A DNA stretch of 64,000 nt from Dicyema japonicum (taxonomy: Eukaryota > Animalia > Dicyemida): positions 1,113,989 through 1,177,988 of the forward strand of contig RDEW01000006.1 in the NCBI GenBank assembly GCA_011109175.1. Direction: 5' to 3'. The notes under the pieces are model-generated. The model did no database searches and was not told the DNA's origin. It worked only from the letters and a program-made list of their open reading frames with translations. The number at the start of each line of letters is the position of its first letter. The stretch's first letter is position 1. A program made the translations under genes and the position numbers. Of the stretch, positions 17,851 to 62,913 are shown piece after piece.

Positions 17851-18087
17851 CCAATTCTGTCACGGTGAATTACTGTGAATCCCGGAAATACTTTGGAAAA
17901 AGTTTAGACTCTTGAGTTAGCAACAGATCGATGTGATTTTCTTTCACAAATGTCCGAAGTTCGAGTATCTTGTTCTTGATTCCATTTATGTTGAGTTGGA
18001 CTATTCTGGCTGGTCCAGGGTTTGCCTCAACGTCTCCGCAGCGGCGCAGGCCTTCCTTATTGGTCCACCCGTGAAGATAGGGGAAAG

Positions 18088-18141
18088 TGTGGTTCTTTTT
18101 TTCCAAATGCCACCACGTCGTCGGCAAGCCACATGACATTA
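18088..18141 (-). ncRNA. HDV-like ribozyme fold, degenerate (P4 and catalytic C deleted)
   Basis: AATGTC-A-TGTGGCTT-GCC-GACGACGT-GGT-GGCATT-TGG-AAAAAAA-GAACCACA, read as P1, P2, P3, L3, P3', P1', P2'. Confidence 0.6.
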
Positions 18142-18169
18142 TCACCATCGATTTTTACTAGGGAGTTTT

Positions 18170-26290: not shown

Positions 26291-27159
26291 AGTTTAAGAG
26301 ATATTATGATATTGGTTTGGAAATATTAACTTTTGGTTACGGAAACCATCAAAATAGCAAAAAATAAACTATCATCAAATTAGAAAATAATAAAATTCAA
26401 TGTTTGATTTTTATTAGTCAATTATATGAGGTTGAGGTTTATTTCAAACGATTAACAAAATAGTCAATTATAACCACAATGAAATTTACTTATTTGGCAT
26501 CGAGGGTGCATTGGAAACAACCGTTGGGTGGATTTGAAAAATTTACTCATCAAAAATTTCTTCAATAATGAATACAATCACGATTGGAGATTGTAACGCA
26601 AAACATACTGAATATGGTTAAATCAAATAGGAATTGAAATTCTTTTTGGAAAAACTCATTCACATTCATCAACAGATTGGAGATATCTGATTATTATGTC
26701 AAAATGTGTGACTATGCGATTGGCCTTATTTGGAAAGTGATATAAAAAGTGATCATCTCTAACAAACTATGGGTTACCGACATGTCCTGTCTATTCATGA
26801 ATTATCTTTTGGATACCAGGAATTTTGATAGCAGTGACGGCACGACGGAATGAGGCTTTGGTCATCTGAAGACCTGACTTCTTTGTCCGCTGGAGATTTA
26901 TGGCTTCGTCTTAACAAATTCAATTATCTCACTTATGAACCGGATTTTGTATGTAAGATTTCTCGATATACTCCACCACGTCCTGTTCTCTGCCATTCTG
27001 ATCGCTTTCAATAAGCAGTGAGGCCGAGTGCGATCGAGTTTGTCCTCAGGACGTTGGCTGCCAAGATTTCCTCTCGATATAATTTTTAGGACATTTTAAA
27101 ACCGAAATAGTACAATTGGGACATCTTAGAAAAAATTAATTAATTTATTAACCCTGGAT

Positions 27160-27448
27160 ACACCGAGAAAGAAGTTAAAGTAACCAACTAATTAAGTGTA
27201 TCCAGTTTCCACTTCTACAGAGTCCATCCGGAATCTAAAGGGTAAAAGACTTCCATAGTTGCAGTTGTGGAAACCCCTCCAGTGGAGTGGGGGAGAGCAA
27301 ATGATCCTTTTTCATGCCGGCCTGGCACTGGGCGTCACCTAGACAGGTGGATCACATGACGCCACTCTAATGAGAAGAGAGAGGAGGAACAGACAAGCAA
27401 GCAGAAAACTTGAACCAATTAACCACGCAGCACCACATGGCGCCACGC
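27160..27448 (-). mobile_element. ~290-bp non-autonomous Ingi/Vingi derivative (leader + HDV-like fold + 3' tail)
   Basis: Reverse-complement homologue of 35571-35860. HDV-like fold at 27300-27364; tail GTGTATCCAGGGTTAATAAA. Confidence 0.8.
27300..27364 (-). ncRNA. HDV-like ribozyme fold (catalytic C position is T in this copy)
   Basis: GGCGTC-A-TGTGATCC-ACC-TGTCTA-GGT-GACGCC-CAG-TGCC(AGGCC)GGCA-TGAAAAA-GGATCATT. Confidence 0.7.
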
Positions 27449-27473
27449 GGATATAGGCCAATCTCAAATAATA

Positions 27474-28729
27474 CACTTAATCCCTTAATTGTTGACCCAA
27501 TTCCCATTAATGTTGACCCAATTCCATTAATGTTGACCCAATTCACACAAATGTTGACCTAATTCCCATAAATGATGTCCAAGTTATATATATAAATAAT
27601 ACACGAATAAATCTATATTTTAATTTCCCCTATTATGGTATCAACTAATACAGATATGAGAAGTCGCAAGGTTTTTATGAACGAAAGTCTATTTAATCAA
27701 ATTAAAAGACTTTACAAAGTTAAAACAAAAAAAGAGTTGATTGAGATCACTTCGATCAGTAAAAAGAGTTTGAACAGGTGTATACAAAAGATTGAAAGCT
27801 GTGGACTCGAGGATCCTTCTTTCGGTGATCTTTACAAGACAGTAGGCCGAAAAAAGAAAGATAAAGAAATGTTGAATGTCGAAATGAGATCTATTTTTGG
27901 AAATGACAACTCGCTGACACAAGTTGGTCTTCAAGAAAAACTTTCAGTGAATCTTTCTAAGTCTCAAATTTCAAGAGATTTAAAGGAGGCCTGCATCACA
28001 AGAAAAAGACTCAAGAAAAGGTCCGAAGTTAGATTGAGTACAGAAAATTTAGCAGAAAGGGAAGTATTTTCATCAAGAATGTTAGGGTCTATAAATAGGC
28101 CGTTATTATTTTTGGATGAAACCGGGTTTAATTTGCATACATCAATTAATTATGGGTATTCCCCAATTAATACTGAAGCAGTTTTGTACCAGACTAAGTC
28201 TAAAGGGAGAAACATCTCAATGTGTTCGGTTATTTCCATAAATGGGAATGAGCATAATATGATATTCGAGGGATCTTTTAATCGGGAATCATTTTTAACT
28301 TTTCTAAATCAATGTGATGAAAAGGGGATATTTACAAATTCTCCTGTTGTTGTGATGGATAATGTTAGATTTCATCATTGTGATGAAATCAAAGACTTCT
28401 TTATTAGGAAAAGTGTTACAACAGTTTATTTACCCCCTTATTCACCTGACCTGAACCCAATTGAAAACTTTTTTTCTCGTGTGAAATCTCGTCTAAATGT
28501 AATTAGACCAAAAGCAACTGTAAGAGAGAATTGCTAACAAATATCGAATTTGTTATGAGTGGTCTCGAAACCGAGGATTTGTCCTCATATTACAACAGTT
28601 TTTGGGAAAGGGTAAATGGAATTAATAACAGATTAATTGAATAAAATACTTTTTTCCTAAATTATTTATTAGTATAATATATATAACTTGGACATATGGG
28701 AATTGGGTCATCATTTATGGGATTGAGTG
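27474..28729 (+). mobile_element. Tc1/IS630-like DD34E DNA transposon with both TIRs and TA TSD; transposase 27635-28643 with a late frameshift
   Basis: LFLDETGF..VMDNVRFHH..YSPDLNPIE, with 34 aa between D2 and E. Ends TA|CACTTAATCCC.. and ..GGGATTGAGTG|TA. ~21-bp subterminal repeats on both ends. Confidence 0.92.
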
Positions 28730-28859
28730 TAAGAAAAAATAAGACAATTATATTTTTTCAAATTATTTTGTATTTTTGTGTTTAACTATAAACAAAATAT
28801 CACAAATACTTAATCTAATTATTCTCAAAAATAACCTAATGATGAGGAGACACCCGCCA

Positions 28860-29220
28860 CAACGGTTTGGGCGGATGCAGTGGTATCCTGGTAAATGCGG
28901 CATAGGTGATAGAGTAAGTCTGCTTTCTTTAAGCAAAATCAAGTAAATGTTCTTTTGTCTATGAAAGACCGCAGTTCAAAGATTTTGCTTTTGATTCCGT
29001 TGATGTTTAAAAATTGAAAGTTGGCGGCTGGATTAAGTTCTATATCACTGGCGAGAATTATTAGAATCACAGTCATTCGAGGCAGATTAAGAAGGGGAAA
29101 AGGCCGTCGTCCGAAGAATCCTTTGTCAACTGGGGTAGCTAACGGTCCTTTTTCGCGGTGCATTAGGTGCACCCTGAGCGCCTCCAGAACTTTCATAACT
29201 GGTAGACCACATGATGCCAC
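28860..29220 (-). mobile_element. 5' end of an Ingi/Vingi-like LINE (HDV-like fold, degenerate 2A, APE start)
   Basis: ILIILASDIELNPAANFQFLNINGIKSK (NPGP with GP lost). Fold at 29141-29219 includes a perfect P4, GGTGCA-CCTAA-TGCACC, and J4/2 CGAAAAA. Confidence 0.8.
29141..29219 (-). ncRNA. HDV-like ribozyme fold with enlarged L3
   Basis: GGCATC-A-TGTGGTCT-ACC..TGGA-GGCGCT-CAG-GGTGCA(CCTAA)TGCACC-G-CGAAAAA-GGACCGT. Confidence 0.65.
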
Positions 29221-29892
29221 GTTTTATATTACAATAAAATCTTTCTATAGTCTTAGTGCAAGATTAATCATAAGAATTTTTGTAATTTAAAATGTTTTTC
29301 TCAAAATAAATATTTATTTAAATTAAATATTTCAAATTTTGCATGTCTGCATGTATTCTTATGTTGGTTTGTCCGTCTTGATTGACTGTTGATGTAACAG
29401 TTAGCTTTATGCGGAAACATTATTTTTGGTTTTAACGCAATTTTCTTTGAATGCTGTAGTTCTTGCCAAATACAGTTAATTAGTCTTTAATTGTTCTAAA
29501 TTGACTTTGTGATGGTCTAGGTTAGTGATTAGGATGTCACACTTGATTCGATTACCCCCATTGGTTGCTTGATCGAAGATTCCTCTGCTTCCTATCTCCC
29601 TTATTCCACTAGGCTTTTTAATTCTGATCCTCCTGCTTTAGATAACCTCAATTGCCAGAATAAAACGAAAATAATAATTTGCTCCATTACTGTACTGAGG
29701 GTTTCCCACAACTATTAAGACTGAATGTGTCTTCCTTTGGTTGTGGATGCGATTATGTGATATTGTGAGGTCTGGACATATTTGATTAATTGCTAACTAT
29801 TAAATTGATTAATTGTTAACTATTAAATTGAGATAAAATTATTTTAAGAAAATTTTGCCCTATGTCAATCAGTCAATAATTGTTTGTACTTA

Positions 29893-30325
29893 GGGTCATG
29901 GGTATATCGTGCCTTCTGGCTGAACTTTACGTATGATGACATCGGATCTTAAGGTCGTGGATTCGAATCCGAAAGATAGAATTATCAGAGAAGGTCAATT
30001 CCTGTCAAACAGATCCCACCCGTGAGGCGATGAGTCCTTCTAGCACGACACAGTAGTTGAAAGGGATCTTCCTACCATCTCCCTTACCGAATACTCTGGT
30101 GAAGATTACATTATGAAAACCATTCCGACGATGAATGAAGTAATGTCCACGACAGTAGGACGTGTGATGAAAATGGAAGATAATGGACCTACTTCTCCAC
30201 TTCTTTTCTGAATCGGAACCCTGCAATGTACTATTGGAGATAGATTTGGTCGGCTAAGCAGATGTTCTCCCTTGTGTTCCTCCCTTGGTTAATAAATTTT
30301 GACTGTTTGTGCTGGGCTTACCAAA
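29893..30325 (+). repeat. ~430-bp SINE-like repeat, copy 2, with a tRNA-like B box
   Basis: Homologous to 8321-8726. Carries an extra AAGGTCGTGGATTCGAATCC (B-box-like, ~29951-29970) that copy 1 lacks. Confidence 0.8.
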
Positions 30326-31109
30326 ATTTGTAAGCCTGGGGTTAACAATAATGGGCATGTCGTCTTCAAATCGAAGACGTTTTTATACCTGATGTCAAAT
30401 ATGGGAGATGTGAAATTACATCCTGGCATAAATTGCAGTACACAATGATTTGAAACGTTTCGGCTCAGGTAAGTTTTTTTTTGTTAGACCATATCTGCTT
30501 AAGTTTGTTTAGGGCGATTGGTGATAGCCTTTTTCCGTTTTTCAGTTCCTCGTCGTTTGGAATTCCAGCCGCCTGCGACAAAAATTAGTCTGCACAAACA
30601 GAGTTTAGAATATATTTAAAACAGACTCTGATCAAAATCATCAAGTTCATCTATTGAAGTTGTTACTCTTCTTGATGCTTATTTGCAAAATTGAAAGTTG
30701 GTGGCCTGGATTAAGGGGGTACGAGAAAGGAGCACCGGGAAAGAATGAGGATTTTGGCGGAACGCATCGGGATCACGTGATAGTTAGTTTTGATTTTACC
30801 GTGGTCTTGGGTGTTAAAAAATAATCTTTTTACTGGTGAGCATATACATTAATGGAAGACTTTTTATATGATTTAATATGATAGTGATTCTGTTTTGGTT
30901 GAGGTAATGACGTCCTTGTCTAGAAAGGACACTCACACAAGAAAAAGAAAAAAAAAGAAGTGAAGATCATTCCTTGGTTCTACGATTAGTTAAAATTAAT
31001 TGTTCTTTACTTAAATAAAGTGTGTGTCCTGCCTATGCGGAGCTATAAAATACTATGGCTCTCGTGAAAAGGCTTTATTATTATTATTAATGACGTCCCT
31101 CATTATGTC

Positions 31110-31830
31110 TAATACACACCCTAGAGAACTCGTGCTAGTTACATTCAATGTGAAGGAAATTGTCACCTTAGTACAAAGGACAAACTGACGGAGGACCTTA
31201 GTCATTATGAAGTTTCTGTAGCCTGCCTTCAAGATACAAAAATAAAAAAAAGAGTTAAAGTCCTGGGAGCATACAGAGTTATACTGGTAGAACCAGAACG
31301 CAGACACTGTACAGGGATTTGCTATTCATCGCTGTTATGCCAATACGATTCACAGATGTTGGAGTGTAAGTGACAGGATCTCGGTCATTCAACTGAAGTT
31401 GGGCAAAACGTTGACTACGGTTATTAACACATAGCAATGAAGTGTCCAGATGAAGTTGAATACTTCTACACTGACCCGAGATGACCATGGACGATATTCG
31501 TGCTTCCCCCTCATTTTTCTTGACGGTGACTGGGACGCAAATTTTGGAACACGTAGTACGGACGAAAACTACATCGGAACCCATAGTAAAGGGAAGAGAA
31601 ATTCTAATGGTACTGTATTCGCAGGTTTCTGCTGTGCATTTGACCTCTTTCTGTGCAATACGGCATTCAAACAAGGAACATGACAACATGAGTCAAATAG
31701 ATAAAAAATCTGAATAGAGAGATAGTTCCGATTTACAATCAAATTGATTATATACGGTGTAAGCGTGATTTCAACTGCATGCTTATGGACTCGCGATCTT
31801 ATGGAGGGTTCACGGCAAATTCGTCTAATT
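31110..31830 (+). mobile_element. RTE APE-domain fragment
   Basis: VTFNVKE..CLQD..QGFA..DRISVIQ..DGDWDANFG..NTAFKQ..QIDYI, homologous to the 5' half of the 4580-7573 element. Confidence 0.75.
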
Positions 31831-33435
31831 AACAATTCGTCTTGTTTTGGTTGTCAAATTACATATGAGCCCAATGTAGTAATTATAAGGATAAAGTATG
31901 TTCATTTATGACTGAACATGTTAAGAGTTCAATATTGTATTTTCTAGACTGTCCTCTTTTTGGCTCCCTTACTCACGGAAGCTGCGACCCGTAGTCGCGG
32001 AACAGGATTCCTTCAAGTCTGGAAGGAGGACAGATTTGTCTCCTACCTTATTCAACTTGCATCTAAGTGATATTCCAACCAATTCTAAGACACTTCTCAT
32101 GCAGATGACCTGATTATCGCTTCTGAAGACAATGACGTTAACGAAGCAACGAAGAATTTTCAGAACCACTTGAACTCTCTTGAAGACTGGCTTGGAGCTA
32201 ATCGCCTCTCCGTCAAAATCCACCACACTATTCACATTGTAATGCTTCCAACTAAATTTTCAGCCGATTTTAACAATTCATGGACAAACACTCCTTGTTA
32301 CGAAATATCCCTAAATACTTGGAATCATTTCGACCATCCAATGACTTCTCAAAACATGTAAAAGAATAATGCACTAAAACCTCTCGCAATACTTTTTTGG
32401 ATAAAGCAAAGAGGCCCTAGGGAATCAAACATCCTTCCAACTGGAGACCATTTGGAAATGAGAGCTCTGTAGTTCTTTTCCCAAGCCTACAACCCAGACC
32501 CTGTCACTCTCCATGCAAAATCAAAACAAAATAAAAATTATAATGACAACCAGTGACCTGTCTCTTTCCAACCACATGTTTAGTCTGTCAATCAAAGTTT
32601 GTAAGCTTCTTGGTACACAATCCATTTAAGCAAAGTCCAGACTCAATCCGAGGTAGGAACATAAGAATGAGTCGACCAAACACTGCAACTTGCGGGGAAT
32701 GACAATTTTTTCAACAAGAAAAGCCTATTCTCCATGACAAAATTGGTAGGCTATTTCAAACCTATTCCCCGAAACCCTGATTGGGAGCAAACCTTGAGAC
32801 CTGACAATATTGTCTTTAGCCATCTAAGGTCCTTCATAGATTTGGGATAATCAGAATCGTGGAAAAAAAACTTTCTTGGGGACAAAAATGTTATTTTTCA
32901 TTAGGAAAAGGAGATATGATTTTCAAGAGGTTTAAGTTTTTCCGTAATGACCGAAACGAATCGACCTTTTTCCTCATAAACTTTTCAAACTCATAGTGGG
33001 CATATATAACTCAAATATCCTTGCACCAGGAAGCAAATAGAAAATGAAAACGCTAAACGTCTGAAAAAATTCCCTACGGAAATAAGGTTGATACTTCTGT
33101 CTGGTTTGTTGAATGCATATAAAAGAGCAATCAAGACACAGTGAAACTACTGATAAGACAGCATCAATATGGAATATTGGCCTGTTTTGTGACGGAGTTC
33201 AAGGTTGTGGCCAAATAGGAGGCAATTGATTCAATAGATGTCCCCTTCGATGAGCTTTGCTTCTATTATTTTCAGTAGATTGTTGCGGACTCCAAACGAC
33301 CCTTCAAGCACGTCTGAATTTAGAATGATGTGATATTGTGCTGGCGATGATGAGAGGTAACTCCCATTGGTGCTAAATGCCTGCGATAGCCTTGTAATAA
33401 TTTACTAATTTCCATAAAGAATAAAGTCAAAATAA

Positions 33436-34640
33436 TTAATAATATTGTGTAGAATTTCCATTCCATTTAGGTTCAGTCTCTCTATCATTATTATTGGAAG
33501 TAGTAAACATTCCACTCACTATAGAATACACATAATTGGGGACATAAAACAACCAATCAATACAAATTCTACCAAATTTGTACATCCTCACAATTGCACC
33601 TTCCTATAATAAATACACAACATTACTGGTTGTGGAGAATGTACAGTAGACACATGCATTACAATAGAACAGGCCTTTATTACATCATCAAATGATCTTT
33701 CTTCTAGTTTTGTTATTTTAAGAGATATTGGATGACCCACATTAATCACAACATTACCACCAAACTCCTATCTTATTATTTAAATTAATACAGCTTCTAT
33801 TAAACTGTAAGCTTGACTCAGTTTGTCCTTTCTACTAAATTCATGTCTTAGACTTCTTCCATCAGGTAGTCTGAACATCACGTTTATTATGTCCCCCTCT
33901 TAAAAACTACATTATCGCCCTCTTTTCGTGGAATAATTGTCTCCTTCTCTTTCAGTCTTTTTGTAACACGTAACTCCTTTTCTTTTCTAACTAAATCTTC
34001 TAATCTCCTCCTATATTCATCTTCTTCAGCTTTTTCTCTCTTCAATTGCTCTATTCTATACTTTTCCGCCTTCTCTTCTAATTCTTTTCTAATATTTGAC
34101 TGTTCAATGCCATCCTTCCGTCTTCTCAACTCATTTTCACCTTCACTAACTCCGCTAATATTAATTAAAAAATAACCTTATTTTAGGTTGAGAAGAAACT
34201 GTTAATGTAAACCTGGTCGAGAAAAAGGTCTAATAATAAAAAAATCAGTAATACTCTAAAGATTCTAACAATAGAACGCATAAATGAGGAAGAGTCACCC
34301 ACGTGATCAACTATTTGACCGACTGATACCCCATCCTTATCAACAAATTGTAAACTGGGGACCTTACAACTAGAAAGATGGTTTATAAAAGAAGGCAATG
34401 AATCCCTAATAATAAAGTGAATTGATTACATAGAGTATTTAACAATAAGTGACCTATTTGCTTCAGTAATAGTATATACTCCCTGTTGGTTAAGCATATC
34501 AATAATAGACAGTGAAAAGTCAGTGTCATCTGTAGTAATATTGTAAATATACCTGATATAAATATAATTAGTAATGAATTATTAGATTTTATATATTCTA
34601 AAGCATTTTCAATTGTTCCACAATAAAACACTCCTGACAT
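33436..34640 (-). CDS. UBXN4: UBX domain protein 4 (erasin)-like, multi-exon
   Basis: N-terminus FYCGTIENAL..LLIIFISG, VPSLQFVDKDG, a coiled coil, UBX (RLPDGRSLRHEF), a hydrophobic segment and the C-terminal signature WNGNSTQ. Confidence 0.85.
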
Positions 34641-34713
34641 ATTAATTTTTTAATTTATTTTAATAAAATAAATTAATGATCAATTTACAAAATGAATTTA
34701 ATTTTTTAATTAC

Positions 34714-35490
34714 AGGAAAGAAATTGGGATGACATTGTCTGCTCCAAAATTTTGAAAGACCTTAAGAAAGAAGCAAATCAACATCGTCTGGCTTGTTTGG
34801 TGTCAGCTTCAAGTCGAGGGAGTGGAGCATGGCTTGGTGCAATACCTTGCCCAAACCTCGGGACCTTTTTGGACGACGATTCTTTGAGGATTGGAATCGG
34901 ACAAAGGCTGGGACTAGACGTTTGCCAGGAGCACCGATGCCGATGCGGGAAAACAGTCGATGTGAAAGGATTGCACCCGTTGTCCTGCAGAAGAAGCGCC
35001 GGAAGGGGACCACGTCATGCCGCTCTGAATGATGTGATCGTCAGAGCTCTGAAGGCTTCAGGCTTCCCAGCACAGCTTGAACCAGTGGGTCTTGATCGAG
35101 GAGATGGGAAGAGACCTGACGGGATGACCCTTTTCCCCTTCACGTCTGGAAGATCTTTGGTCTGGGACGCAACTTGCATAGACACGTTCTCAAGCACGAA
35201 CATTTTTAAATCGGTTCAGACACCTGGAGCAGCTGCTTCGACCGCGGAAAACTTAAAAATCAAGAAATATTCTTGCCTCGGGGATCGCTATTGATTTACT
35301 CCTGTTGCGACCGAATCATCGGGAGCCGTTGGTCCAATGACGGCTGAATTCTTGCAAGAACTCGGAGGATTGCTTGCCAGAAAGAAAAGGGATCAACGAG
35401 AAGGGTTATGGCTAAGACAAAAGATTGGAATAGCCATACTCCGAGGGAACTCGTTCGCAATCCACGCAGCAGGCTTCCTCAACTGACATT
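34714..35490 (+). mobile_element. 3' end of an RLE-type (CRE-like) non-LTR retrotransposon
   Basis: SGAWL..RLG..CRCG..HPLSC..RHAALN (CCHC knuckle), then KRPDG..WD.T (PD-(D/E)xK endonuclease) and ..ILRGN, followed by an A-rich tail. Confidence 0.85.
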
Positions 35491-35570
35491 TGTTTAATTG
35501 TTAAAAAAAATTTTTATTTAAAAAAAAATTACAGGAATCATAAGAATAAAATTGATTATCATATCGCCGA

Positions 35571-35860
35571 GTGGCGTCATGTGATGCAACGTGGCTAATT
35601 GGTTTAAGTTTTCTGTTTGTTTTGCCTGTTCCTCCTATTTCCTTTCTAGTAGAGTGGCGTCATGTGATCCACCTTTCTCAGGTGGCGCCCAGTGACAGGC
35701 TGGCACGAAAAAGGACATTTGCTCTCCTCACTCCATTAGAGAGGGTTTCCCAACTGCAAGTAATGGACGTCTACGCTGGTTTCTGTAGGAGTGGAAACTG
35801 GCTACACTTAACTTGTTTACTTTTAACTTCTCTCTTTGTGTATCTGGGGTTAATAAATTA
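35571..35860 (+). mobile_element. ~290-bp non-autonomous Ingi/Vingi derivative
   Basis: Leader + pyrimidine tract + HDV-like fold (35655-35719) + GGAAACTGGCTACACTTAA + TGTATCTGGGGTTAATAAA. Sister copy of 27160-27448. A degenerate partial leader follows at ~35885-35960. Confidence 0.8.
35655..35719 (+). ncRNA. HDV-like ribozyme fold, best-conserved core
   Basis: GGCGTC-A-TGTGATCC-ACC-TTTCTCA-GGT-GGCGCC-CAG-(weak P4)-CGAAAAA-GGACAT. 7-nt L3, possible P1.1 (CT/AG), catalytic-position C present. Confidence 0.7.
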
Positions 35861-36611
35861 AAAATAAAAATTTGCGATTTTGGCCCAGTGGTACCATATT
35901 GTGCCAGGTGGCTAGTTGATTGAAGATTTCTCTTTCTTTCTGGTGGCGTCATCCACCTTACTAAAGAGACGCCTAATTTATCCACCAAAGACTTGACTGA
36001 TAAATGTGAATAGCCATATTAACGAAAGGAATGACTGTAATAAACTCATATCCCCCAATATTTATAAATAGGTTAGTTTTAAAATTTTCCATGAATAACT
36101 GTGTCAAGGGAGAATTTTCTGTCGAAATAATTCATGAAAGTTATAAATCTTCAATGGTTCCGGTAACAAAAAACGAGAATTTAGAGGGAGAAGGAAACAT
36201 ACTTTGTATCAAAACTAATTTCATAAATTTGTAAAAACCCCAAATCGTGACAGTTAGAGAGATAATGCATATCACGTCCTTATTGATGTATGTTAAAACT
36301 CATTTGTTAGCCATAAAATGAGGGATTTTGTGGGTAATTTTGTGGTCCTCAATGAAGACATCTGCCAATGCAGCGAGATTCCACTTGAAGACTTCATAAA
36401 CATGCATGAGCTTCAACGTATCACACCTCTATTGTTCGTGCTCTCCTTGACAACTGTGGTAATCTGGTCTCTTACTCTGACCATTCTTGTTTAGGGATAT
36501 TTTCTTAAGCTCACTCACAGATATAGCAGTACATAGCTCCACCAAGTATGGCCAGCAATACCAGGGTATTCTGGGTAGCCTGCTACGTACCTGCAAGACT
36601 ACATGTAGCAT

Positions 36612-36748
36612 TGTGGTTAATCCTGTCGCTCGAGTCACAATTATATGTGGGTTTGATTATCATATATTAACGTTTTGACCTTTCCAGAGGTTAAACAAGG
36701 ATTGCCAGTACTCTGAGGGTGATTGTTCGAATCTAAATCATGCTTACC
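36612..36748. repeat. ~135-bp dispersed repeat (second copy 42945-43080), origin unknown
   Basis: GTGGTTAATCC..CGAGTCACAATTA..TTAACGTTTTGACC..CAGAGGTTAAACAAGGATTGCCAGTAC..ATCTAAATCAT is present at both sites. Confidence 0.7.
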
Positions 36749-37011
36749 TCTCCCAAACCTACACTACAAACCATCAATGTCATTCTCTTTGCAAAACCCT
36801 CAACAAAAGAAAAATTACACTGTTCGTCTACAATGCCATAAATGACTGATCTATGGGAGCGACGACATACGTCCTATTAAATAGGCCTTGTTCTCCTAAA
36901 AGTCAGTACTTAACTAAAAGAGAGAGACAGAAGTTAAGAGAATTTTTTAATGTGAGATGAAATAAAATTAGGATGCCTAGTGAAGGTAATTATCAATAAA
37001 ATTCCTTTCGT

Positions 37012-37701
37012 TTATACTTTCTCTGGTAATTTTGAGGGAGAGACCTTCGACGAGCATTGATGAACCAGTTATTGATTTGCACGTGTGTTAGATTTGTTTT
37101 GTAAACCATTTCAGCCTTTTCTTGTTCAGTTGGATAAGGGTTCTGTTATAAGTGTGAAACAAACCATAGCATTCTCATATAACCATTTTCGTAATATATT
37201 TGTTGATTTGATTGATAAACATCTTTTTTCTAATTTGTCTGTAATTTCTGAATCCTAATTAAATTAATAAAATACTTTAAATGTTTCATTTTTTAATATT
37301 TGCACTAATATTTATTATTTATTAATACTTTTAATCTTTTCTATATTTGATTTTAATTCGTATTTGTAGTAATTAGAATACGTGTCTTTAAACTTATTAA
37401 TATAATCATTCATCAGTTTAAACTCCAACAATTGACTCCACAGTGATTCGATCGCACACTTTATCTACCATTACATATTAATAAATACCACTTCTTCCAC
37501 TTCCTTACTCCCTTCTTTTTTGTTTTTAAAGCTTTCTAACATACAAATTTGAATTTCTGAGATATCATCCATCACTAAAGTCCCCCTTGTTATTAAATTT
37601 AGTTTTTCATAAATTTTATTAATAACTTTGAATAAAAAATGACTAATTTATATATAAAACTACTTTTTAATTTCCATTTTAATTAAATCTTTAGAACTCA
37701 T
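37012..37701 (-). CDS. TALE-class homeobox gene, Meis/PKNOX(Prep)/homothorax-like (MEIS domain + homeodomain)
   Basis: Spliced: [13 protein letters not shown]|[23 protein letters not shown]|[50 protein letters not shown]|[35 protein letters not shown]. The PYP loop and WFINARRR are present; introns 21-24 nt. Confidence 0.88.
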
Positions 37702-37830
37702 TACGAAATATACGTTTAAATTATATTTAAAGGTATAAATTAAACAGCAGTTAATCCTTACTTTGAATATAAGAGTACTTACATGTTCTTTAATATTCAC
37801 TATAAAAGGTTGTTCAATAAATTATAATTT

Positions 37831-39850
37831 TTGATGCATTGCATGAGTATTTTCATAAGGTGATTGTCGATGTTGTTAATGGAAAATGTATTCCAGGGGA
37901 TTGGTCATACTGGGATAACGCATCGTTTACCAAAAAGGAATATTGTGAGGCATCAAAGATTTACGACCAACTACATGCATGCCGAACTTATATAAACTGA
38001 TAACAAAATGTGTCAATAAGAAACTAAGTGATTTTGTTGACACATTCCAAATAATCTCAGATATCCAACTAGGAACGAAGTGTCAGGGTGCTAATAAATC
38101 AGTGTATTAACCAAGAATTTGACAACTCTTTATATTCAGCATGGATAGACGTCCAAAAAGCGTTTGACAGCCGTGAATTCCTATTTAAAACTCAACAATG
38201 CACATTAGCCAGTCTAGTCTATCGATGATTACCTATGCCACTAACAATTTGCTTTTTATGGATGATCTAAAAATATTTGCCCAGAAAGAGGCCACGATTA
38301 TTAAGATGATGCACGACATTGAATTATTTTTTGAATCAGCAGGACTCAATAAAAACATTAAGTCGGCTACTAATGTTGAATGTTTATCAAAGGAAGCAAA
38401 ATATTTGGATGGAACTGAAGGCTATCGATACCTTGGAGTGTTGGAGGATAAATGGAGTAACACTCTAAAACAGGAAATTTTAGAAAAGATTGCCGATGAA
38501 GTTATAAAAAGAATTAAAGGTTTGGCAAGCACAAAGTTGAATGCAGTAAATATGTTCAAAGCAATTAACGAATCCGCACTGTCACTTTACAACTATTATA
38601 TTGGACTAATCAACATTGAACCACATGAGTTTGAGGATTTTGATGTTGACGTTTGACGTATTATTTATGAGATAAAACTTCATTTAAAGCCTGCAAATAA
38701 AAAGAGGCTTTATTTATAAAGAGATAAACTTGGGAGAGGACTCACTTCAATCGTGTTCAAAAGTGGATGCATGTTGTTCCAATTCCTCCATGATTTGGAA
38801 GGAAAATCTAATGTATGTCTGAGGAAAGCTGAATTCTGCGGATTGTCAATTTAAAGAAAACACATATGCCCACGATCGCCGGGATAATTCCTCTGCAATG
38901 GATGTACGGAAACTTAAACCAAGTTCAAATTGAATAGTTATTGATGAAAATTAACAGTAAATCTCTTCATTCTATGTTATTCAAAAAAGACCCGACTGTT
39001 GACATTGCATCATCTTCGGGATGGCTACGAGGGAGACCAAAAATTTGTTCTTTGAAGAAAAAGGATCGAATTGCAATCATTGTAAATCTTCCAAACAAAG
39101 CAGTCGATCATTTGGCAACGAGATGCAATAAGGTGTTAAATAGTGATTACATACGACGTCACAATGAGGTGGTGAGATGATTCATTTAAACCTGTGTCGT
39201 AAATATGGAATCACATATTCAAAGAAACTGAAGACTCACGCAGTCCAATCAATAGTAACAACTGAGAATGTTGAGATCCGAGTCGATACAACGCAATTGA
39301 CGGATGTCAAAGTACAACATAACAAGCCGGACATATTTGTTTGATAAAAGGACAAGTGAGATTACTTTAGTGGAGGTTGGAATCACTTCTCAGGAGATGC
39401 TGAAGGTGGTTGAGGTAGAAAAACTTCATAAATACGACCTCCTCGTTGGAGAGTTGTCTCAAATATACAACGCGAAAATTATTCCTATTGTTTTGACTTG
39501 GGAGGGAATTGTAAGTTCTACAAGTCATATATGGATGTTTTGGACGTGGATATAATTCCGAGATTAAATCTATTGTGTTAAACAAAACTCTTGAAAGAAT
39601 GTTAGTGGAGCAGCGAAATGGGATGAACTTTCAAGAGAGTGATGTCATTCATTTCCTACAACGAAAGTCTCTACAACAATTTGAGGATGACGGAATCGTG
39701 CCCATAGAACAACAATGCTGGAGTGAAGATCATATTGGTGATGGTGACCAAGAGATTGCAGTTAAGGAATGGCTCAAACGAAAGAAATTAAATTAATACA
39801 GCCAATCAATTTTAAATATTTAATTCTGACTTTTGGTTTTTGTTTAATTG
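37831..39850 (+). mobile_element. R4/Dong-like RLE non-LTR retrotransposon, 5'-truncated and decayed, flanked by a ~95-bp direct repeat
   Basis: WIDVQKAFDS, LFMDDLK, YRYLGV, LNAVNMFKAIN, LGRGL, VDHLATRC..RRHNEV, NKPD-like, LVEVGIT. Confidence 0.85.
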
Positions 39851-40304
39851 TAAATTAAACAGCAATTAATCCTTACTTTGAATATGAGTACTTACATGTT
39901 CTTTAATATTCATTATAAAAGGTTGTTCAATAAATTATAATTTATTTTCCCATACTTTTAAATTAGTTTATACTTTCACAATATTCATCAGTCTCATTGC
40001 CGAACAGGATTGTCTATAAAGGACTTCTGCTTCCTTGGTTCCTCTTCGAATATTTAATACTACTGGTCTTTGCTTAAAAATAAAGTGTGTATCCTGTCTG
40101 GGATGAGCGATATGACTCTTCTTAAAGAACAGTATTATTATGAGTCGTGTAGAAGATCAGTTTTTCGGTGAAGTATTCAATAGCGTCAAACCTAGAGTAT
40201 CAGCGGAATGTACAACTGTGAGATTAGAACAAAACTTATAAAGAGGGTAGTTTTAAATCCATTTTCATAGTTTTCACAGTCCATTTTAAAAAAGAATTAA
40301 TTTT

Positions 40305-40590
40305 ATTTAACCAGAAATACACCGTCAGAGACAACGAAAAAATTTAGGTTATCCTGGCCTCCCTCAGCAATCTTCGCATGCTCTGAATTGAAGGAAGTGC
40401 CGTCCAGGGGAACTCCTCTGGATAATTGTTAACTAATGGTCCTTTTTGGATTTAATTTAAGATTATATCTGGCGCAACCAGAGATGGTGAACCAATGAAT
40501 TACGCTAACAATTCAAGCTTCCTAGAGACAAAAGAGAAGAGGAAAAACAAATACAAAATCTTCAATTCACGTAGCCACATAGCACCGCAC
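40305..40590 (-). mobile_element. Non-autonomous internal-deletion derivative of the 43345-45513 LINE family, with HDV-like fold at 40436-40507
   Basis: 5' ATCCAGA..CCTGGACGGCACTTCCT matches 45435-45465. 3' GAGGGAGGCCAGGATAACCTAA matches 43360-43381. Fold: GCGTA..TGGTTC-ACC-ATCTCT-GGT-TGCGC-CA-GATATAAT(CTTAA)ATTAAATC-CAAAAA-GGACCA. Confidence 0.78.
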
Positions 40591-40769
40591 TAACTTTGTC
40601 GCAACGTAACATAGTTGCCAATAACTTTATAAAAATTGTAAGATTATTAAGTGTTGGCTTTAAAAACTATTAATGTGATAATAATGGAACAATAATAGTC
40701 AATTAACGCTCTTTGAAGCTGCCCCACTTACACTTTCAGGCTGTTCGAGTAAATAATTTGGGGAGTCAT

Positions 40770-42480
40770 GGGTTGAGTTTTTTTTCAATTTGTTCATTCA
40801 TATTTTCAAGCAACCTCAATAGCCTTCGTAAATCATTCCAACATCAATATTAGTTTCCTACAAACCCATTTTTATGTCGATAGGGGTTACTCTTAGCCTC
40901 TTACTCATCGTTGTTTGGAATTCCCACTTTATCTTTTTTTGGCGATTGTTAGGATGTGATTCCCACTTCTATTGGAGTTATTGTATTCTTCATATTATCA
41001 AACACAACTATGTCGGGTTTATTATTTTGTACCTTTGTGTCCAAGGCTATTGTTGCATCCACTCGAATTTTCATTTTTTTATGTTTTGGTTGTCAAATTT
41101 GGAAGGTTTTATGAGCCCAATGTAGTAATTATAAGGATAAAGTATGTTCATTTATGACTGAACATGTTAAGAGTTCAATATTGTATTTTCTAGACTGTCC
41201 TCTTTTTAACCCCATCAAATATTTACTTAAACACTTTGTTTTTCAATACGATGCTTGTTTATCCTCTAACACATCAAGGAATCTACATCCATATTCCGTC
41301 AAGAAAATTACCTTCAGATCCCAAGGTGAGCACATTCGTAGCAGATTTGACTTTTTGTTCAAGTCAAAAAAGAAAAAGAATTAATCTCCTACATCATAAT
41401 CGTTGTGTTTGCTTCTCGAAGGAATAATTTTAGATCGTCCATAACAGGAGGTGGTTGGTTAAATAACTATGAGATCTTTGGTCGTGGTTGTCAATAACCA
41501 CTTTGAGGTATTTCGTATCCTGCTATGAAGGTCTATTACAAGCACGAAAATCTGCGGTGACAGAGTCATGATGCAGTATCCTTCTCTTTACCTTGATTTC
41601 CCCAATTTCTTTGTGATTAAAATTCAGTAAAGGAGTCTAGAGTTATTGAGTACTAAAATTATTCCAGTCAGTCTATCCAAGCAGTGGCCAAATTATTCAC
41701 GTTCTGCTGGTTGATGCATTGGTTTAATAGTGCCTGCTCCTTAGCCTCTTGGTACATTCTTCTTGTTCCCAATTGATTGTCACTGATGGTATGCCTCAAT
41801 ATACTCTGATAATTTTCTGTTCAAACACTTTGTAACCAACTTGTATAAACTACACGTAATTGGTCTTAAGTCCTTTGGGAAATACGTCTTTCTTTGGGAT
41901 GAGATGTGTAATTCCAGCGTAGAACCACTCATCTGGAATATACTTTCTGTCATTAACTTGGAGACCTCTTCACAGAGGTGGTCATGAATTTATGTGAATT
42001 TTTGAGGAAGAAGTTATACACCCAATCACATCTACTAATTCTTCAGTTCGGGAGCTGTTTAATTAGGGTACTTTCTTTACTAAAGTCTACAAATGTATTT
42101 TCTTCCCGATCACTTTTTTTTCATCAAAAATTTGTTCACATTTTCGCCTATTTTTTCCATAATAAAAGACACTCGCTTTTGTTGAACAAAAATTGAGCAT
42201 TCATTTGCTCCTTGTTTAAGCCACGATAACAATATCTTCGATTGAGTTCAAAACACCAATTATGTTTTTTGAATTCCTTTCTAGATTCATGGATTCGAAG
42301 TCTTTTCTCACAATCTTTATGCCATCCTGAATACAAGCACTGATTCTCCAGAATTCACCTTTATTTGACTTTCAATATCCACATTAGCAAAGCATATCCC
42401 TCGTTTCATCATATCTTTCGTTCCTTCTCTTTTCGGTAAGCTCTGTTATTTGTTCAAACTGCCTCTTCAATTTTGTAAGT
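40770..42480 (-). mobile_element. Second R4/Dong-like RLE retroelement, decayed
   Basis: IPDEWFYAGITHLIPK, GYCIMTLSPQIF, YLKVVI and NPNNRQK-type remnants across frameshifts; related to 37831-39850. Confidence 0.6.
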
Positions 42481-43344: not shown

Positions 43345-45513
43345 AGCAATAAACAAAATTCAGGTGATCCCGGCCTCCCTCAACAGTCTTCATATCTTTT
43401 CTCGGTGTTCCGACTGCGTTCCTGTGCATTTCCGATATGGACGGGGTCCGCATACTTGAGTCCTTCGCAGGAGCACTGTTCCAGTCGTTTCTATCATATT
43501 TTCAAGGTTTCTGGGCAGGATTTCCACACGGGAAGATTTCCTTAATAGGTTTGCTGCCTTCACTTGAATGTTGCAGATCTTGTCCAAATTCGTTGCAACA
43601 AAGTTAGATCACCAGACATTAAATGCATATCTTATTGTAGACTAGATGAACTGTTTGTATATGACATCCAGTCCTCTTTTTGTCTCAGGTTTCCAAGAAC
43701 GCCTTCAGGAAGTTGATTTTCCTTGTACAAGTCAGTAACATATTTTCGACATGGTCTGTTAAGGTTATGAAGGTGTCAAAGGTAACTCCTAGGATTTTCT
43801 AGAATTTGTTTGCGGGATATTCTTCCCATCCAGTGTGACATCAATTGATACTTTCCCTAGTTTTCTGTTCGAATAGGGTCAACATCTAGGAAGGAATGTC
43901 GTGTGAGTATCATAATCATCCTTTCTAAGATTTTTGTCTGGACGCACAAGAGCGACAAAGGCTTGTAAGAAGCCGGGACCTCCCTTGGTTTCCAAGACTT
44001 CAGAATTGGATGAATATTCGAAAGTTTTCATATAGCTGGAATACAGTAAAGTTGATTGAGTAGTTGAAGATGTATGTTAGTGCTGATACGCCCAATGTGC
44101 CCATCTTTTTCAACAGAATAACTGGGATCCCGTTCGGTCCACAGGAATATGTGTTCTTTGTTCGATAGATCTCCAAAGCGACATCTCCCGGTAGAAATAC
44201 ATTGTTGGAAGCTTCCTTTTTGGTTTCGGTTTTTTGTGTGGAGGAATATTCATCCTTTTGGAAAGGTTTGTGGCTTATTCTCACACAATGTTTGATAAAT
44301 TTATTCAGATCCATCTCCTGTTCACGGTCTCCCTCTATTTTATTTTCGGCGTTTTTGACATTTTGCAGCATCCTACAAATGTTGGTAAGTTAACTATTTT
44401 TTCATAGCATTAGAAATTCGGCCCAGTTTTGTTTGTTGGAGAAGTTTTGACTTTTCCATGTTCAGTGCACTGATTCTGTTAGTATCATATTTTGTTAGGT
44501 GCTTTTTACGTTTGAGACAATTTCTATTTTTTATTAGTTTGATTATGCTAGCAACATACTTCTTGGTGAGTTTTAAGATTCCTTTTCTGACAATTGCTCT
44601 ATCAATTGAAATTATTCGGATGGAAATTCAATAAGGACGAATCCACGTATCTTCTGAATCCTCTCCAGTCAGCATTAATATAGTCATAAAAATGACGTGT
44701 TTTGACCGCGTCATTGGTGTACAATTGATCTTAGTCAGAATGGGATTATGGTCGTTTCGTAGATCACAGTGTACCCATCAGCATATAAGCGGAGCAAGCC
44801 ATGGTGAACATGATGTAATATCGGGCGATGTAAGCGAATCTTTGCTATTATACGGGGTTCGAGTATTCCTATTTGGGTCGTTCATAATGGACAGATTTTC
44901 TAATTGGGGAATAATATTAAACCCCATTGTGTCTGGAGGTTGTTTCTCATTCCACGAAGGGTGCTTGGCATCAAAATCCCGAACACCAACAAGTTTTCCA
45001 TCATATCTAGGGCAGACAAATCCATAGAAAACCCATTGCACAGGAACCTGGAGGGGGAACATAGACGTTGGCGATAATAATAGCTCCGAGAGAGGTCTGT
45101 ACCGAAATCCTAATAACTTCTGTGTTTGCGTCTTCTATCAGATTCCTGAATATGGAGAAGTGTTTATCGAACATAATGCCTTTCCTGACAAGGTCAATAG
45201 TCCCCCAATACATTGAAACCGATAAATTTAGGAGTAGTGGAATTCCCAGAAAGTTTAATCTCTTGTAAATGGCAGATATCAATTTTATTCCTCTCCAAAT
45301 ACAATCTCAGTTCGGATGCCTTGCCTCTGACTCCGTTAATGTTCAGGCTAAGTATCTTTAAAAACTTTGGTCCCGGATTCATTTCAACATCTCCTAACAT
45401 GACGAGTCTCCACCGAAAAAGTGCACGGATGTGTAGGAAGTGCCGTCCAGGAAAACTCTCTGGATGGTTGTATCCAAAAAGGACTTTTTGGATACAATTT
45501 TGACTTGTATCTG
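43345..45513 (-). mobile_element. Ingi/Vingi-like LINE with intact 2A motif; decayed and internally deleted
   Basis: RLVMLGDVEMNPGP-KFLKILSLNING..LQE, NVYVPP, DFDAKHPSW, SPDIT, KILGVTFD, C-terminal CGPRPY..H, ending LLREAGIT*. Confidence 0.85.
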
Positions 45514-50250: not shown

Positions 50251-51837
50251 ATGATAAACCCCTCTATCTAACCACTAGTTCAGTTTCTAATAAAGTTATG
50301 TTATTTTTTTACCTCAAGTTGACCATAAATGGTTATGAAAGAGTAACAAATCGCTTGCAAGAATACGGTTGAAATGTTTGGTGTAACGTTAAACACCATC
50401 AGACAACAAGTGAACAATGTGCTAAAGTACTAAGTTGGTCTAATTACTTGTGACTATGGTAGGTGGCTGAATATGTTGAATACATATTAACAGATTATTG
50501 AAAAGTTTAATTTACAAAGGGCTGTCCATCTTAATGAATTAATTATGGAACCCAAAGATCATCAAGAAAGATATTAAAACAAATAAGTGATCCCAGCTTC
50601 CATTATTCCCAGACTCGTAGTCTTGCAATGTCCCAACTTTAGAACGGTAGAGCCAACGCAAATCCTTACAACATTTTTTTTAAAACCGATCCAAGTTCCT
50701 CTATGTGAGCATCACTCAATAGGTTTTTTCGGTTTTTTGCAGAAACACAGGAAACCGGGCGCAAAAACAAAGTAGTTATCCGTCTGATTGAATTTAGTTT
50801 GTCGAGTTCGAGCGGGAATGTCGCAAACTTCCATGGGAGACAGGTATATTCGATTGTTGGGACAATGACCTGGCTATAGGGTATAGAAACAGGATTTATT
50901 TATTTAATAACCCCGAGAAGGGAACACCAAGAAAGAATGCAACTAATTAAGTGATCCCGGTATACCTCAAAAAGATCGAGAGGTTTTTCTTTTGTTCCTC
51001 CAGAGTACCCACGGATTTCTTGTGTCGACGACGATCATCTTTCATTAAAATTTGAAGAGGGGTGGGTTTTTTTTTCAATATACGTGTATTTGAGGCTTCT
51101 AGTCTTGAATGGAAGAAACGACTTGTTTCGTGACCACACAGAATAGATCCTTCAGATATTTGTGAGAAAGTGTGATTTAATAGAATACAAGTTCTTTAAT
51201 GCAGTCCCAAGATGCTTAAGGTGGATCGTTATTATCCCATCTGGGCAACATGCACTAGTTGTGCATAGTGAAACAATGTAATCAGTCATATTATCTGGAG
51301 TGAAGAAGATAATTGGACTGAGGGGTTTAAATTAAAGTACTTTACCGTACGGAGAGATCCAAGTCTTTGTGACTCATGTCGACGTAGTGTTTTAGTAAAT
51401 TATAAGGTAGGGACTGGCCGATCCACTGCTGTCATTCTCGTTGATAAGACTGTTTATACTTGGTAGCGGTTTCCGGAAGGTGGACGTGAATTTTCATGAC
51501 ATAACGTCAAACGAGACGACTCAACTTGCCAATAATTCGAATTAATTGCGATATTGTAAAATTGAGGAAGTGTAAAGACGATTAAGAGTCATCAAATTGT
51601 TATGATAAATTATTAGTAATAGACTAAAATTCTAATTAATAAGAACAGTCCTGGTGATCCGGCATTCTTTCAAAGGAAATGCATTATTAATTTGTATAAA
51701 TAGATACTACAATAATTAAAGAATTTATAATATATATATATTTAGAATTAATTAAATAAGTAATAAAAATTCTTTTAGGATGGAAAACCTAACGATAAAT
51801 ATTTATAGAAACGCTCGCTATTTCGATCGTTTTTGTT

Positions 51838-55732: not shown

Positions 55733-58700
55733 ATGTGGATTATACCCAAAGAAATAACAAAAAATGACAAAAGATGGTAATTATATAATAATATGAAAGG
55801 GAAATTGAGAGAGCCAACATGTTCTTTTCACTACAAATATACCACAATTACTTTATTAATGACAGAAAAGTATATTTTAATAAAATTTGAGAAATCCCGA
55901 ATTGTTTTAATACTCAAACATAAAAAATATAGTATTTATTTTATTTATTCAGTTATTTTCACTGACACGTTCGAGGAAAGTCTAATAATGTGGACTTGGA
56001 TAGAAAATAACCTTCTCCCTACTATTTGTATGTGACTCCTATATTCTAGTTTCCATGGACGAGGAGAATGACATTCTTCCGTTCATCAGTGACAAAATAC
56101 TCTCAATCCTCGAACAACCCTTACCTTTGGAGACAGTAAACACTGACCTTGTGTGTGGTATTAATTATTTTTATGGAGAATTTCCCTGTTTTTACTGGTA
56201 TGACGCAATTCCCATATCTGGGACAGCCTTCATTTGGCTGACTCATTTATCATTCGATTCAAACAAACACCACGTGAAAATAAACTGGTCTTCGTTGTTG
56301 GTTGGTAACGTGGGATGAATTTTTAGGATACAATGCCTCTCCAACACGTCTTCTCCGTTGATGTTGTGACATTTGTAACCCAAAACAGACTTGTTTGTAT
56401 GTGGATGTAATGTAGCACCGTTTTTCAGTGATAAACAATTCCAAAGAGTTTGAAAATATAACGGGAATGATGATAAAACGGAGTAGTGACTCACAAATGG
56501 ATAAGTATTTACTTTATTCATCACAGATACTCCATTCCTATCAAAAGGAGATTATCAGCCATCAAAATATGGGACAGGACAAGGTATATCCCCTCTTATT
56601 TCACACAGAAAGACATTCCATATTTCACAGACGGAGGAACTTAAGAGCTTCACTCCCACCTGTCTATTCGTCCCCTATCTTGAAAAGTCTGTGACTGGCC
56701 ATCTTTTCCTTTCTGACAACTTTTTTTGTTTCACCAGCAAGGTGATTCTTATTTTTATGTAGACTGAAGGACTTGCCTCCTTGGCTATCCCTTTCTACGA
56801 AATTGTCTCTATTTCGTCGGTCTCCCACGAAAAGATTTCCATAATCACACGTGATGAGGTTAACTCTGGATTAACGTTAAGAACACTTATCAATTCACAG
56901 CCATATCTAGCTTGGAATTCGAGGAATCTGTTAGAGTTTTAAATTTGACTTTAAATTTGCATTCTTCCAAACCACCCTGTCTTCACCACCAAGGTCATGT
57001 GGGAATATTATTTTAGACATGGAAACCGCTTTCTGTGCTCTACATCTAAGACAGAACGATTTTAATGAAAGAATGGTAGACAGACTTGCTGAGTGTAACT
57101 GGGAGATGCTTCTTCTTAAAACAGGATGTGGTCCTTGTATGTACAGAATCTCAAAGACAATAGAATATTCCTACTCAGGCATCGTTGAAGGGTACCGTCA
57201 GGATATATGTGTACTCAGGTGCAGTTTATCTGGTTTTTCTACATTTTACTTAAGCGGGATCAACAACCGGACTACTATAGAAGGATTCTCTCTCAGTCAT
57301 GTAATGAAACCATTGCCGATGAGATTGAGAAGGATCTTTATAGGTATTACACTTTTAAACTCAGATCTTTGCCTGAACATCCAGTATTCCGTACAGATAA
57401 GGGAGTCAGGGCCCTTCGTAGACTTTTGACAGCATATGCTATACATAACCCGTCTGTAGGGTACTGCCAGGCCATGAACATTGTTGGGTGTGTCCTTCTG
57501 GTATACTGTGACGAAGAAATCGCTTTTTGGATATTTGTACAGATTTGTGAAGTTCTCTTACCTGATTACTATGATAAAAACGTATTTGGCGCACGTGTGG
57601 ATATACAAGTGTTACGGATGCTCAACAAAAAGTACCTCCCATCAGCTTATGCACTTCATAACATGGGAAGTGATCTTTTCACAGGGATATGTCTCTCTTG
57701 GTTCCTTACCATTTTTATAAACGTGATGCCATTCAACTGTGCTGCCAGAATCATTGATTGCTTCATTTGTGAGGGACCTCCCGTTTGTGTGGTTTGATAT
57801 GATAGATCCTCTTCCGTGTGGCCCTCACCATGTTCAGTCACTGCACCGACGGAATTAATAACGCTAACGAGTATTTTGAGGTCGTCACTGTAATCAACAA
57901 TTATCTTAATCGGATTGTCTACCGGCAAAACAGTATGTGCAACAAAACAGATCCCATTAGAATTGACGACCTTCTCAATAAATCTCACTCTCTTTTTGGT
58001 GGCATTACAATAGGGGAGATTGATTCTCTCCGGACACGCGTTCGTTTATCTATAATGCAGGTTGGTGAGTGGACAATTGTCTAGGACAACGCCAAACGTA
58101 ATATTGACGACGTGATTGGAAGTGCATCTGTGATGAGTCTGCTCTCCCCTTCAGAACTGACACAATTATTTTATGTTTTTAAAGCCAACTTTTTTGGAGA
58201 TCAGTGGACTGACTCTCAGAATCTCTTTGAATTTGAGGACGCAATTTTTGATCCTGCTGACTACTACCGAATAAGATTTGACCAATATTCTCTCCTAATG
58301 AAGAGTCTCACTCCTTATCGTCTTTCCGATGATCTCATACTGAGGATATTTAAAGTTTACGGAAATTTTATATTCCATAGCTGTTGGACAAGTCCTCTTC
58401 CAGTACAATATCTTTTCTTGATTTTTCCTGGCTGATTGGCTTACTCCATAAAGGAGACACATCCAGCATATTAGTTTTACTGTATTTGGCACATCTTTAT
58501 TCCCTTGAAGGTGAGGAATTGAGTTATTCTTAGAATCATCAGATCCCCAGGAAGCTTCCCAACTTCACAAAGGTTGAGGTTACTGTTATTTCCAGATATG
58601 TACCAAATTGTCGTGCAATTTCAAAACAGAATAACTTTTAGTGAATTTCCAAACATCGACTCTGTAATCTGGTTTTTATTATTTAGACTCGATTGCTCAA

Positions 58701-62871: not shown

Positions 62872-62913
62872 CACACAATAAGACGGCGGGTAATATTTAA
62901 AAAAATTAAAAAA

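Follow-up and report, generated by a model that had tools for sequence, protein, structure and literature searches.

HDV-like folds have been described at the 5' ends of LINEs. In T. cruzi, the APE-type LINE L1Tc and its non-autonomous partner NARTc carry such a fold, L1TcRz/Pr77, in their first ~80 nt, and the same stretch appears to serve also as a promoter-type 5' module (PMC3185411, PMC3383444). L1TcRz was shown to be active and cuts at the first nucleotide of the element; the G·U wobble at the base of its P1 is not absolute, with L1Tc starting at C1, and its P1.1 is minimal (PMC3185411). R2 elements, which are rDNA-specific and co-transcribed with 28S, have a double pseudoknot at their 5' end, with variable P4 and J1/2 and a covarying P1 of ~7 bp. 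The R2 cut falls at or upstream of the junction, so that self-cleavage strips all upstream sequence from the template and none of it is inherited (PMC3774820). The Perere-3 LINE of Schistosoma mansoni carries at its 5' ends a motif of another ribozyme class, a twister variant that has been linked to translation of the downstream ORF and whose cleavage site adjoins the target-site duplications (PMC8501958). In HDV and CPEB3 (RF00094, RF00622), a 3-bp, G/C-rich P3 abuts P2 and P1', and J4/2 reads (G)CGAA.

We analysed a stretch of 64,000 nucleotides (the window; animal DNA, 36.7% G+C) from Dicyema japonicum, whose genome comprises 67.5 Mb in 377 scaffolds, with 36.7% GC and 49% repeats (Lu et al. 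2019; PMC6736024), in a study that also used pooled RNA to obtain a reference transcriptome. Window and genome carry what is probably a lineage-specific family of HDV-like double pseudoknots, located in the 5' module of APE-type LINEs and of SINE-like derivatives. The association with an APE-type LINE and a non-autonomous partner, the apparent promoter-type character of the module, the non-canonical +1 pair and the minimal putative P1.1 recall L1TcRz/Pr77. The position at LINE 5' ends, the variable P4 and J1/2 and the covarying P1 recall R2, and, as with Perere-3, the LINEs that carry a motif of ribozyme type at their 5' ends belong to a parasitic spiralian. The strand order, the short P3 wedged between P2 and P1' and the start of J4/2 are those of HDV and CPEB3. 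Unlike L1TcRz, the ribozyme activity is here putative, the cut is predicted to lie downstream of a conserved 3-7-nt leader (90 nt in the SINE), the AUG is enclosed by the fold and sequence similarity is absent. Unlike HDV and CPEB3, the fold has a P1 of 6 bp with a base pair that is mostly G-C, three extra A in J4/2 and an L3 of up to 30 nt, and the models of these two ribozymes did not match the fold sequences.

In the collection of papers searched, none connects dicyemids with ribozymes. If the fold is active, HDV-like ribozymes would extend to Dicyemida, and this genome would offer natural variants, in the hundreds to thousands, of a core missed by current Rfam models and characterized by the 6-bp P1, the long J4/2 and the L3 inserts. 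The elements bearing the fold account for a sizeable slice of a genome reported to contain 49% repeats (PMC6736024).

Copies of the fold in the window

A loose HDV-like descriptor gave 1,059 matches in the AT-rich window. A fold that can be drawn is therefore no evidence by itself; what counts is that homologous families conserve it while its paired positions change in a compensatory way. A covariance model built in this analysis (R1), which contains P2, P3 and P4 only, was run on the window with filters off and gave exactly four significant matches, with E values of 1e-14 to 1e-25 (Table 1). These matches (59-96 bits) bear out four of the six places named in the sequence-only reading, and the helices listed there can be read directly in the copies at 35655, 27300, 29141 and 40436. 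The fifth place, 18088-18141(-), had been taken for a copy of the fold and is rejected: R1 matched at 18085-18147(-) with 9.6 bits and E=2, and both P4 and the J4/2 C are absent. What lies there is the 5' end of a different LINE, with a head-like motif and the ATGTGG start codon. The sixth, 45485-45513(-), is a P4-J4/2 fragment that shares 75% identity over 83 nt with the 40436 copy, and it had no significant R1 match in the window scan.

The copies at 35655 and 27364 represent two subfamilies of a SINE-like element, 79% alike over ~320 bp. The 35655 copy is damaged by a 1-nt deletion in P2' and one mismatch in P4. In the 27364 copy all helices are complete (P1 GGCGTC/GACGCC, P2 TGATCC/GGATCA, P3 ACC/GGT, P4 TGCC/GGCA), and a T replaces the J4/2 C, a CpG transition; at that site its sister copies (n=28) carry CG in 17 cases versus TG in 10. 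The 29141 copy, of family C, has a G1·U at the base of P1, P3 CCAG/CTGG, P4 GGTGCA/TGCACC and J4/2 GCGAAAAA, and its P1 carries an A·C mismatch. A leader of 3-5 nt (~29219-29223) separates it from the 5' end of a LINE fragment, which is interrupted downstream by a Tc1/mariner element. The 40436 copy, of family E, combines P1 AGCGTA/TGCGCC (5 bp plus an A·C), P2 TGGTTC/GGACCA, P3 ACC/GGT, an A/T-rich P4 of ~7 of 8 bp and J4/2 CAAAAA; the head and spacer before it follow the same layout as in the SINE. The absence of a +1 G-U pair, stated in the same reading, applies to the other families, in which this pair is G-C, and does not apply to family C, including the 29141 copy: G·U was found in 34/103 sequences, all of that family.

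Table 1. Features located in the window (positions from the first letter of the stretch)
Feature	Position	Strand	Remarks
R1 match	29138-29225	-	96 bits
R1 match	27297-27370	-	65 bits
R1 match	40432-40510	-	61 bits
R1 match	35649-35722	+	59 bits
HDV-like fold, decayed	35656..35717	+	Helices read directly; R1 59 bits
P1 of this fold	35656-35661 with 35684-35689	+
P2 of this fold	35665-35670 with 35713-35717	+	1 nt missing
P3 of this fold	35671-35673 with 35681-35683	+
CAG of this fold	35690-35692	+
P4 of this fold	35693-35705	+	One mismatch
J4/2 of this fold	35706-35712	+	CGAAAAA
HDV-like fold, every helix intact	27302..27363	-	R1 65 bits
HDV-like fold, family C	29143..29218	-	R1 96 bits
HDV-like fold, family E	40437..40506	-	R1 61 bits
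Head motif and pyrimidine-rich spacer	40511..40602	-	..CTATGTGGCTACGTG..; upstream of the family E fold
P4-J4/2 fragment only	45485..45513	-	P4 hairpin GATACAA/TTGTATC, then CAAAAA
SINE-like non-autonomous retroelement containing the fold	35563..35868	+	81% identical, whole length, to a genomic full-length copy
SINE-like element copy	27140..27455	-	91-94% identical to at least 40 scored genomic copies
Tc1/mariner-type DNA transposon	27543-28722		Between the family C fold and the SINE copy
DDE_3 ORF of this transposon	27635-28537	+	300 aa
Terminal inverted repeats of this transposon	27543-27593 and 28677-28722
Host gene/exon, EF-hand protein	13283-13858	-
Host gene/exon, RabGAP-TBC domain	57207-57797	+
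Host gene/exon, LEM domain	62419-62874	-

Genomic subfamilies, covariation and class

Relatives of the fold were gathered from the same genome by a DNA search, two pattern scans and a covariance-model scan. The pattern scans returned 39 matches versus 11 in controls and 96 versus 24, and the covariance-model scan returned 150 scored matches, each above 52 bits and with the strand order P1-P2-P3-P3'-P1'-P4-P2'. The relatives sort into ~10 subfamilies. P1 reads GGCGTC/GACGCC in the SINE type, GGCGTT/AACGCC in B1, B2 and B3 (the L3 of B3 and B2 carrying an insert of 10 to ~14 nt) and GGCGTC/GGCGCT, with G1·U, in C; further relatives form D, E, F, G and several single variants. Since copies decay neutrally once inserted, the informative units are the subfamilies, and independent compensatory events number about 10, not hundreds.

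Pairing was retained in three alignments. With MAFFT (13 sequences), 88% of the cells were paired (31-48% in slid-partner controls), and 9 pairs were changed on both sides versus 4.0 in shuffles (0/500). With R1 (105 sequences), 85% were paired (controls, 30-47%); P1, left unmodelled there, was 88% paired, with pair 13-83 being U-A in 60 sequences and C-G in 28. With model R2 (P1, P3 and P4; 29 representatives), 85% were paired (controls, 32-53%), and the unmodelled P2 reached 86.5%, with three pairs changed on both sides. The covariation claimed for the nested double pseudoknot is thus upheld, at ~85-88% of cells paired versus 30-53% with slid partners, the structure tested being derived from the very sequences counted. 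Two relatedness-robust measures reached only 77/500 and 27/500 shuffles in the larger alignments. P4 has at least 8 different sequences across subfamilies and forms a hairpin each time. J4/2 opens with C(G/A)AAAA in every family, so the lengthening of this junction, also noted before, holds throughout; it is CG plus AAAA in 67/105 sequences, the variants being mostly CC, AC or TG, and decayed copies have TG or CA at the C. The trinucleotide after P1' is CAG in 79/105 sequences. Some of the compensatory changes and part of the conservation fall at synonymous codon positions (B1 and C copies, codons judged by eye). As judged from these comparisons, the families show an RNA structure under selection, in which P1, P2 and P4 covary and an invariant J4/2 C is followed by G/A and a run of A. 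The alignments support a nested double pseudoknot of HDV-like strand order that is kept through compensatory changes.

P1 has 6 bp in the fold family as a whole, family E being an exception with 5 bp. P3 is ACC/GGT in the SINE and in families D, E and F, where L3 measures 6-7 nt and a possible P1.1 (CU/AG), too short for a covariation test, sits one C away from P1'; in families B and C, P3 has 4-6 bp and L3 has 11-30 nt. The P2/P3 and P3'/P1' junctions are 0-1 nt long. The GCGAA of J4/2 is that of the HDV and CPEB3 cores, in which this junction is shorter than the 7 nt found here. Nested MFE folds recovered P2+P3+P4 or P1+P4, and in the B families the leader (UAGCG) and the 5' strand of P1 also formed a small competing hairpin. 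An alternative P1 formed through the leader (AGCGT with ACGCC) was rejected; it is the sole option in family E and is weaker than the main register elsewhere.

Standard HDV-like models miss the fold, as had been anticipated: those of Rfam had no match at the window copies at gathering score and, at E<=10, none across 27000-41000 (14 kb) or in 3.6 kb from six short loci with the best genomic copies. The Rfam scans gave chance sRNA matches only. A metagenome pattern scan returned six contigs in which the pattern-specified letters alone match, without P1 or other similarity. A core of ribozyme type is suggested by the strand order, the 0-1-nt junctions, the invariant C with GAA, the G1·U of family C and the occurrence near LINE 5' ends. 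The 6-bp P1, the mostly G-C pair at +1, the spacer C before P1.1, the 7-nt J4/2, the long L3 of families B and C and the Rfam misses argue for an activity that would be weak, conditional or lost.

Element 5' ends and the role of the fold

The SINE-like unit is ~310 bp long; a first look gave 1,974 candidates when the whole unit was considered and 1,589 when only the 3' half was. It is short, non-coding, dispersed in many copies and flanked by target-site duplications, as expected of a SINE-like element. The window copy at 35563..35868 consists of a ~90-nt head and pyrimidine-rich spacer, the fold, a ~150-nt body and an A/T-rich tail; within the unit, the fold occupies positions ~92-157. Thirty genomic copies, 91-94% identical, start at GCCGCGTGGCGCC and end in a (TAAA)n-type tail. 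Target-site duplications of 9-13 bp were found at at least 4 loci, and together with the flanks they bracket the entire unit, head included. The first ~25 nt of the head repeat the leader and the 5' strands of P1, J1/2 and P2 (GTGGCGCCATGTGGTGC versus GTGGCGTTATGTGGTCT), and a TGA directly follows the ATG. The copy at 27140..27455 has its 5' end at ~27450-27455.

In the LINEs, the fold is followed by Exo_endo_phos_2 and RVT_1 domains. RNase H was not seen among the ORFs of at least 150 aa, and a homology search with the reverse transcriptase (RT) gave no clade: its named relatives are called just "jockey-like" or "X-element", which leaves the Ingi/Vingi-like affinity suggested in the sequence-only reading putative. 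Families B1 and B3 are collinear, with 75% identity over 2.9 kb. Copies of B1, B3 and C have unrelated upstream flanks. The first homologous letters are (T/G)TAGCGT, ahead of GGCGTT, in B1 and B3 and (A)ACGT, ahead of GGCGTC, in C, i.e., 3-7 nt upstream of the predicted cleavage site. The LINE AUG lies within J1/2-P2, and in most copies of B1 and B3 no stop codon interrupts its frame for 50-78 codons or more. Because this ATG opens the frame from inside J1/2-P2, the fold also forms the first ~25 codons of the LINE.

Mapping of these ends contradicts the earlier proposal that the fold stands at the 5' end of the elements. In the two best window copies, which belong to the SINE, it lies ~90 nt inside, the LINEs place it 3-7 nt inside, and none of ~100 sampled copies starts at the predicted cleavage site (0/~85 LINE copies chosen via the fold and 0/~20 SINE copies chosen regardless of their upstream part begin at G1). 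In repeat-family contigs from four runs of one sample (run type unrecorded), homology gives way to unrelated flanks at 27450, the SINE 5' end; among the best-supported ones listed, none breaks at 27363. The fold is thus not what sets the 5' ends of the element copies. The leader and the 90-nt head are conserved in the copies, and therefore templated. Efficient cleavage of the R2 type should have removed them here, and because every copy inherits them, the reverse-transcribed RNA was the uncut form. The gap between the predicted cut and the inherited ends distinguishes, in a matter of general relevance to LINE ribozymes, a ribozyme that makes the end of the element from a ribozyme or fold that serves translation or binds a protein.

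An efficient HDV-like ribozyme heading the elements and making their 5' ends, as in L1Tc or Drosophila R2, is already disfavoured by these genomic copies and seems to us very unlikely. The fold and its covariation would suit it, as would the location within 7 nt of the LINE 5' end, and at three loci (L127, L129 and L139) the LINE 5' end abuts, head-to-tail, the ..GGGGTTAWTAAATAAATAA tail of another element, which makes read-through co-transcripts, and their processing, plausible. The ends and flanks nevertheless precede the predicted cut by 3-7 nt in the LINEs and by ~90 nt in the SINE, and these nucleotides are conserved, hence templated, whereas the duplications or junctions of Perere-3 and R2 sit at the cut (PMC8501958, PMC3774820). 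We give equally little credence to the view that no functional RNA structure exists and that the block is kept at the DNA level, as an internal promoter and as the first ORF codons, with incidental helices. The first ~25 nt (GCGTGGCGYYATGTGG) do recur alone, without the rest of the fold, in the heads of the SINE and of the 18141 and 40600 loci, the region is coding in the LINEs, and some paired changes are synonymous third positions (judged by eye). Yet two-sided changes preserve pairing in P1, P2 and P4, P4 was swapped wholesale with its hairpin retained, slid-partner controls are only 30-53% paired, and pair 13-83 is kept despite joining the 5' UTR to a first codon position. Moreover, indels of 1, 10 and 13 nt between families disrupt a shared reading frame across the fold.

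A structured 5' double pseudoknot that does not cleave is a possible but doubtful alternative. The 5' pseudoknot of R2 is a binding site for the element's own protein, and the fold, perhaps ribozyme-derived, could likewise bind such a protein or control translation at the AUG; carried into SINEs, it could aid their use of the LINE machinery. This would fit a conserved structure of which all sampled copies retain the 3-7-nt leader or the 90-nt head, the AUG inside the fold, the lack of matches to Rfam HDV-like models and a non-canonical core (6-bp P1, mostly G-C at +1, long L3, long J4/2). A mere binding site, however, would not require J4/2 to open with an invariant C and then G/A and AA, as it does in HDV and CPEB3. 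A strand order identical to that of HDV, with 0-1-nt junctions, is a catalytic architecture, and family C has kept the G1·U wobble. We tentatively prefer, at a little less than an even chance, a self-cleaving motif that would act on the mRNA side, trimming its own or read-through transcripts before the AUG. Cleavage is predicted to separate T(-1) from G1, at a point six nt ahead of the AUG. In the element's own or in read-through transcripts, it would leave an mRNA that lacks a cap and can be translated, a role that has been proposed for LINE ribozymes elsewhere. Self-cleavage may be weak or conditional, the uncut RNA would be the form copied into DNA, and in the SINE the ribozyme may be a passenger or attenuated by the head. 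A full scenario, in which an active ribozyme around the LINE AUG is also translated as a 2A-type leader, its cut uncaps the mRNA, the uncut RNA is copied and the SINE head attenuates cleavage, is unlikely as a whole.

Neighbouring elements

The ORF of L1Tc begins with a 2A peptide at its N-terminus. A similar feature is found in a neighbouring LINE of the window: a canonical 2A ribosome-skipping motif, GDVEANPGP (..RRCGDVEANPGP), is encoded at 18011-18037(-), near the N-terminus of a decayed LINE ORF. In B1 copies, the frame that starts at the ATG within the fold encodes GDILVPGR, a degenerate form of the motif. The LINE at 18141 belongs to a different family, with an endonuclease 48% identical to that of B1, and it is in fact two elements: a 5' part with head, 2A motif and endonuclease, then a 5'-truncated RT. 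The latter, from ~15546 downwards (14660-15535, -), is of the B3 type, with 96% DNA identity to the B3-family LINE at locus L164.

Loci L094, L095 and L098, as well as the flanks of L035 and L038, contain another repeat family, which has a tRNA-like B box (GGTTCGATTCTCG) and ends in ..GTCAAAAAAGGACCCACACACAAGAAAA. ARAGORN found zero tRNA in L095 and L098, the two B-box loci checked. Two B2-family folds lie 241 nt apart (L165:6387-6486 and 6628-6728) at the end of the 6.7-kb contig C192, within which there is no larger tandem array of folds. A SINE copy (L060:2834-2929) has a deletion between the two P1 strands (GGCG...CGCC).

The 43-nt spacer between head and fold at 27367-27409(-) has the form GT...pyrimidine tract...TTAG and resembles a short intron or a splice acceptor. 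Every SINE copy has a spacer of this GT...TTAG type, and LINE families B1 and B3 start at the same TTAG. At 50903-50928(-), a 3' end (..TTCTTGGTGTTCCC..GGGGTTATTAAATAAATAAAT) is similar to that of the SINE and is a candidate for the end of a partner LINE.
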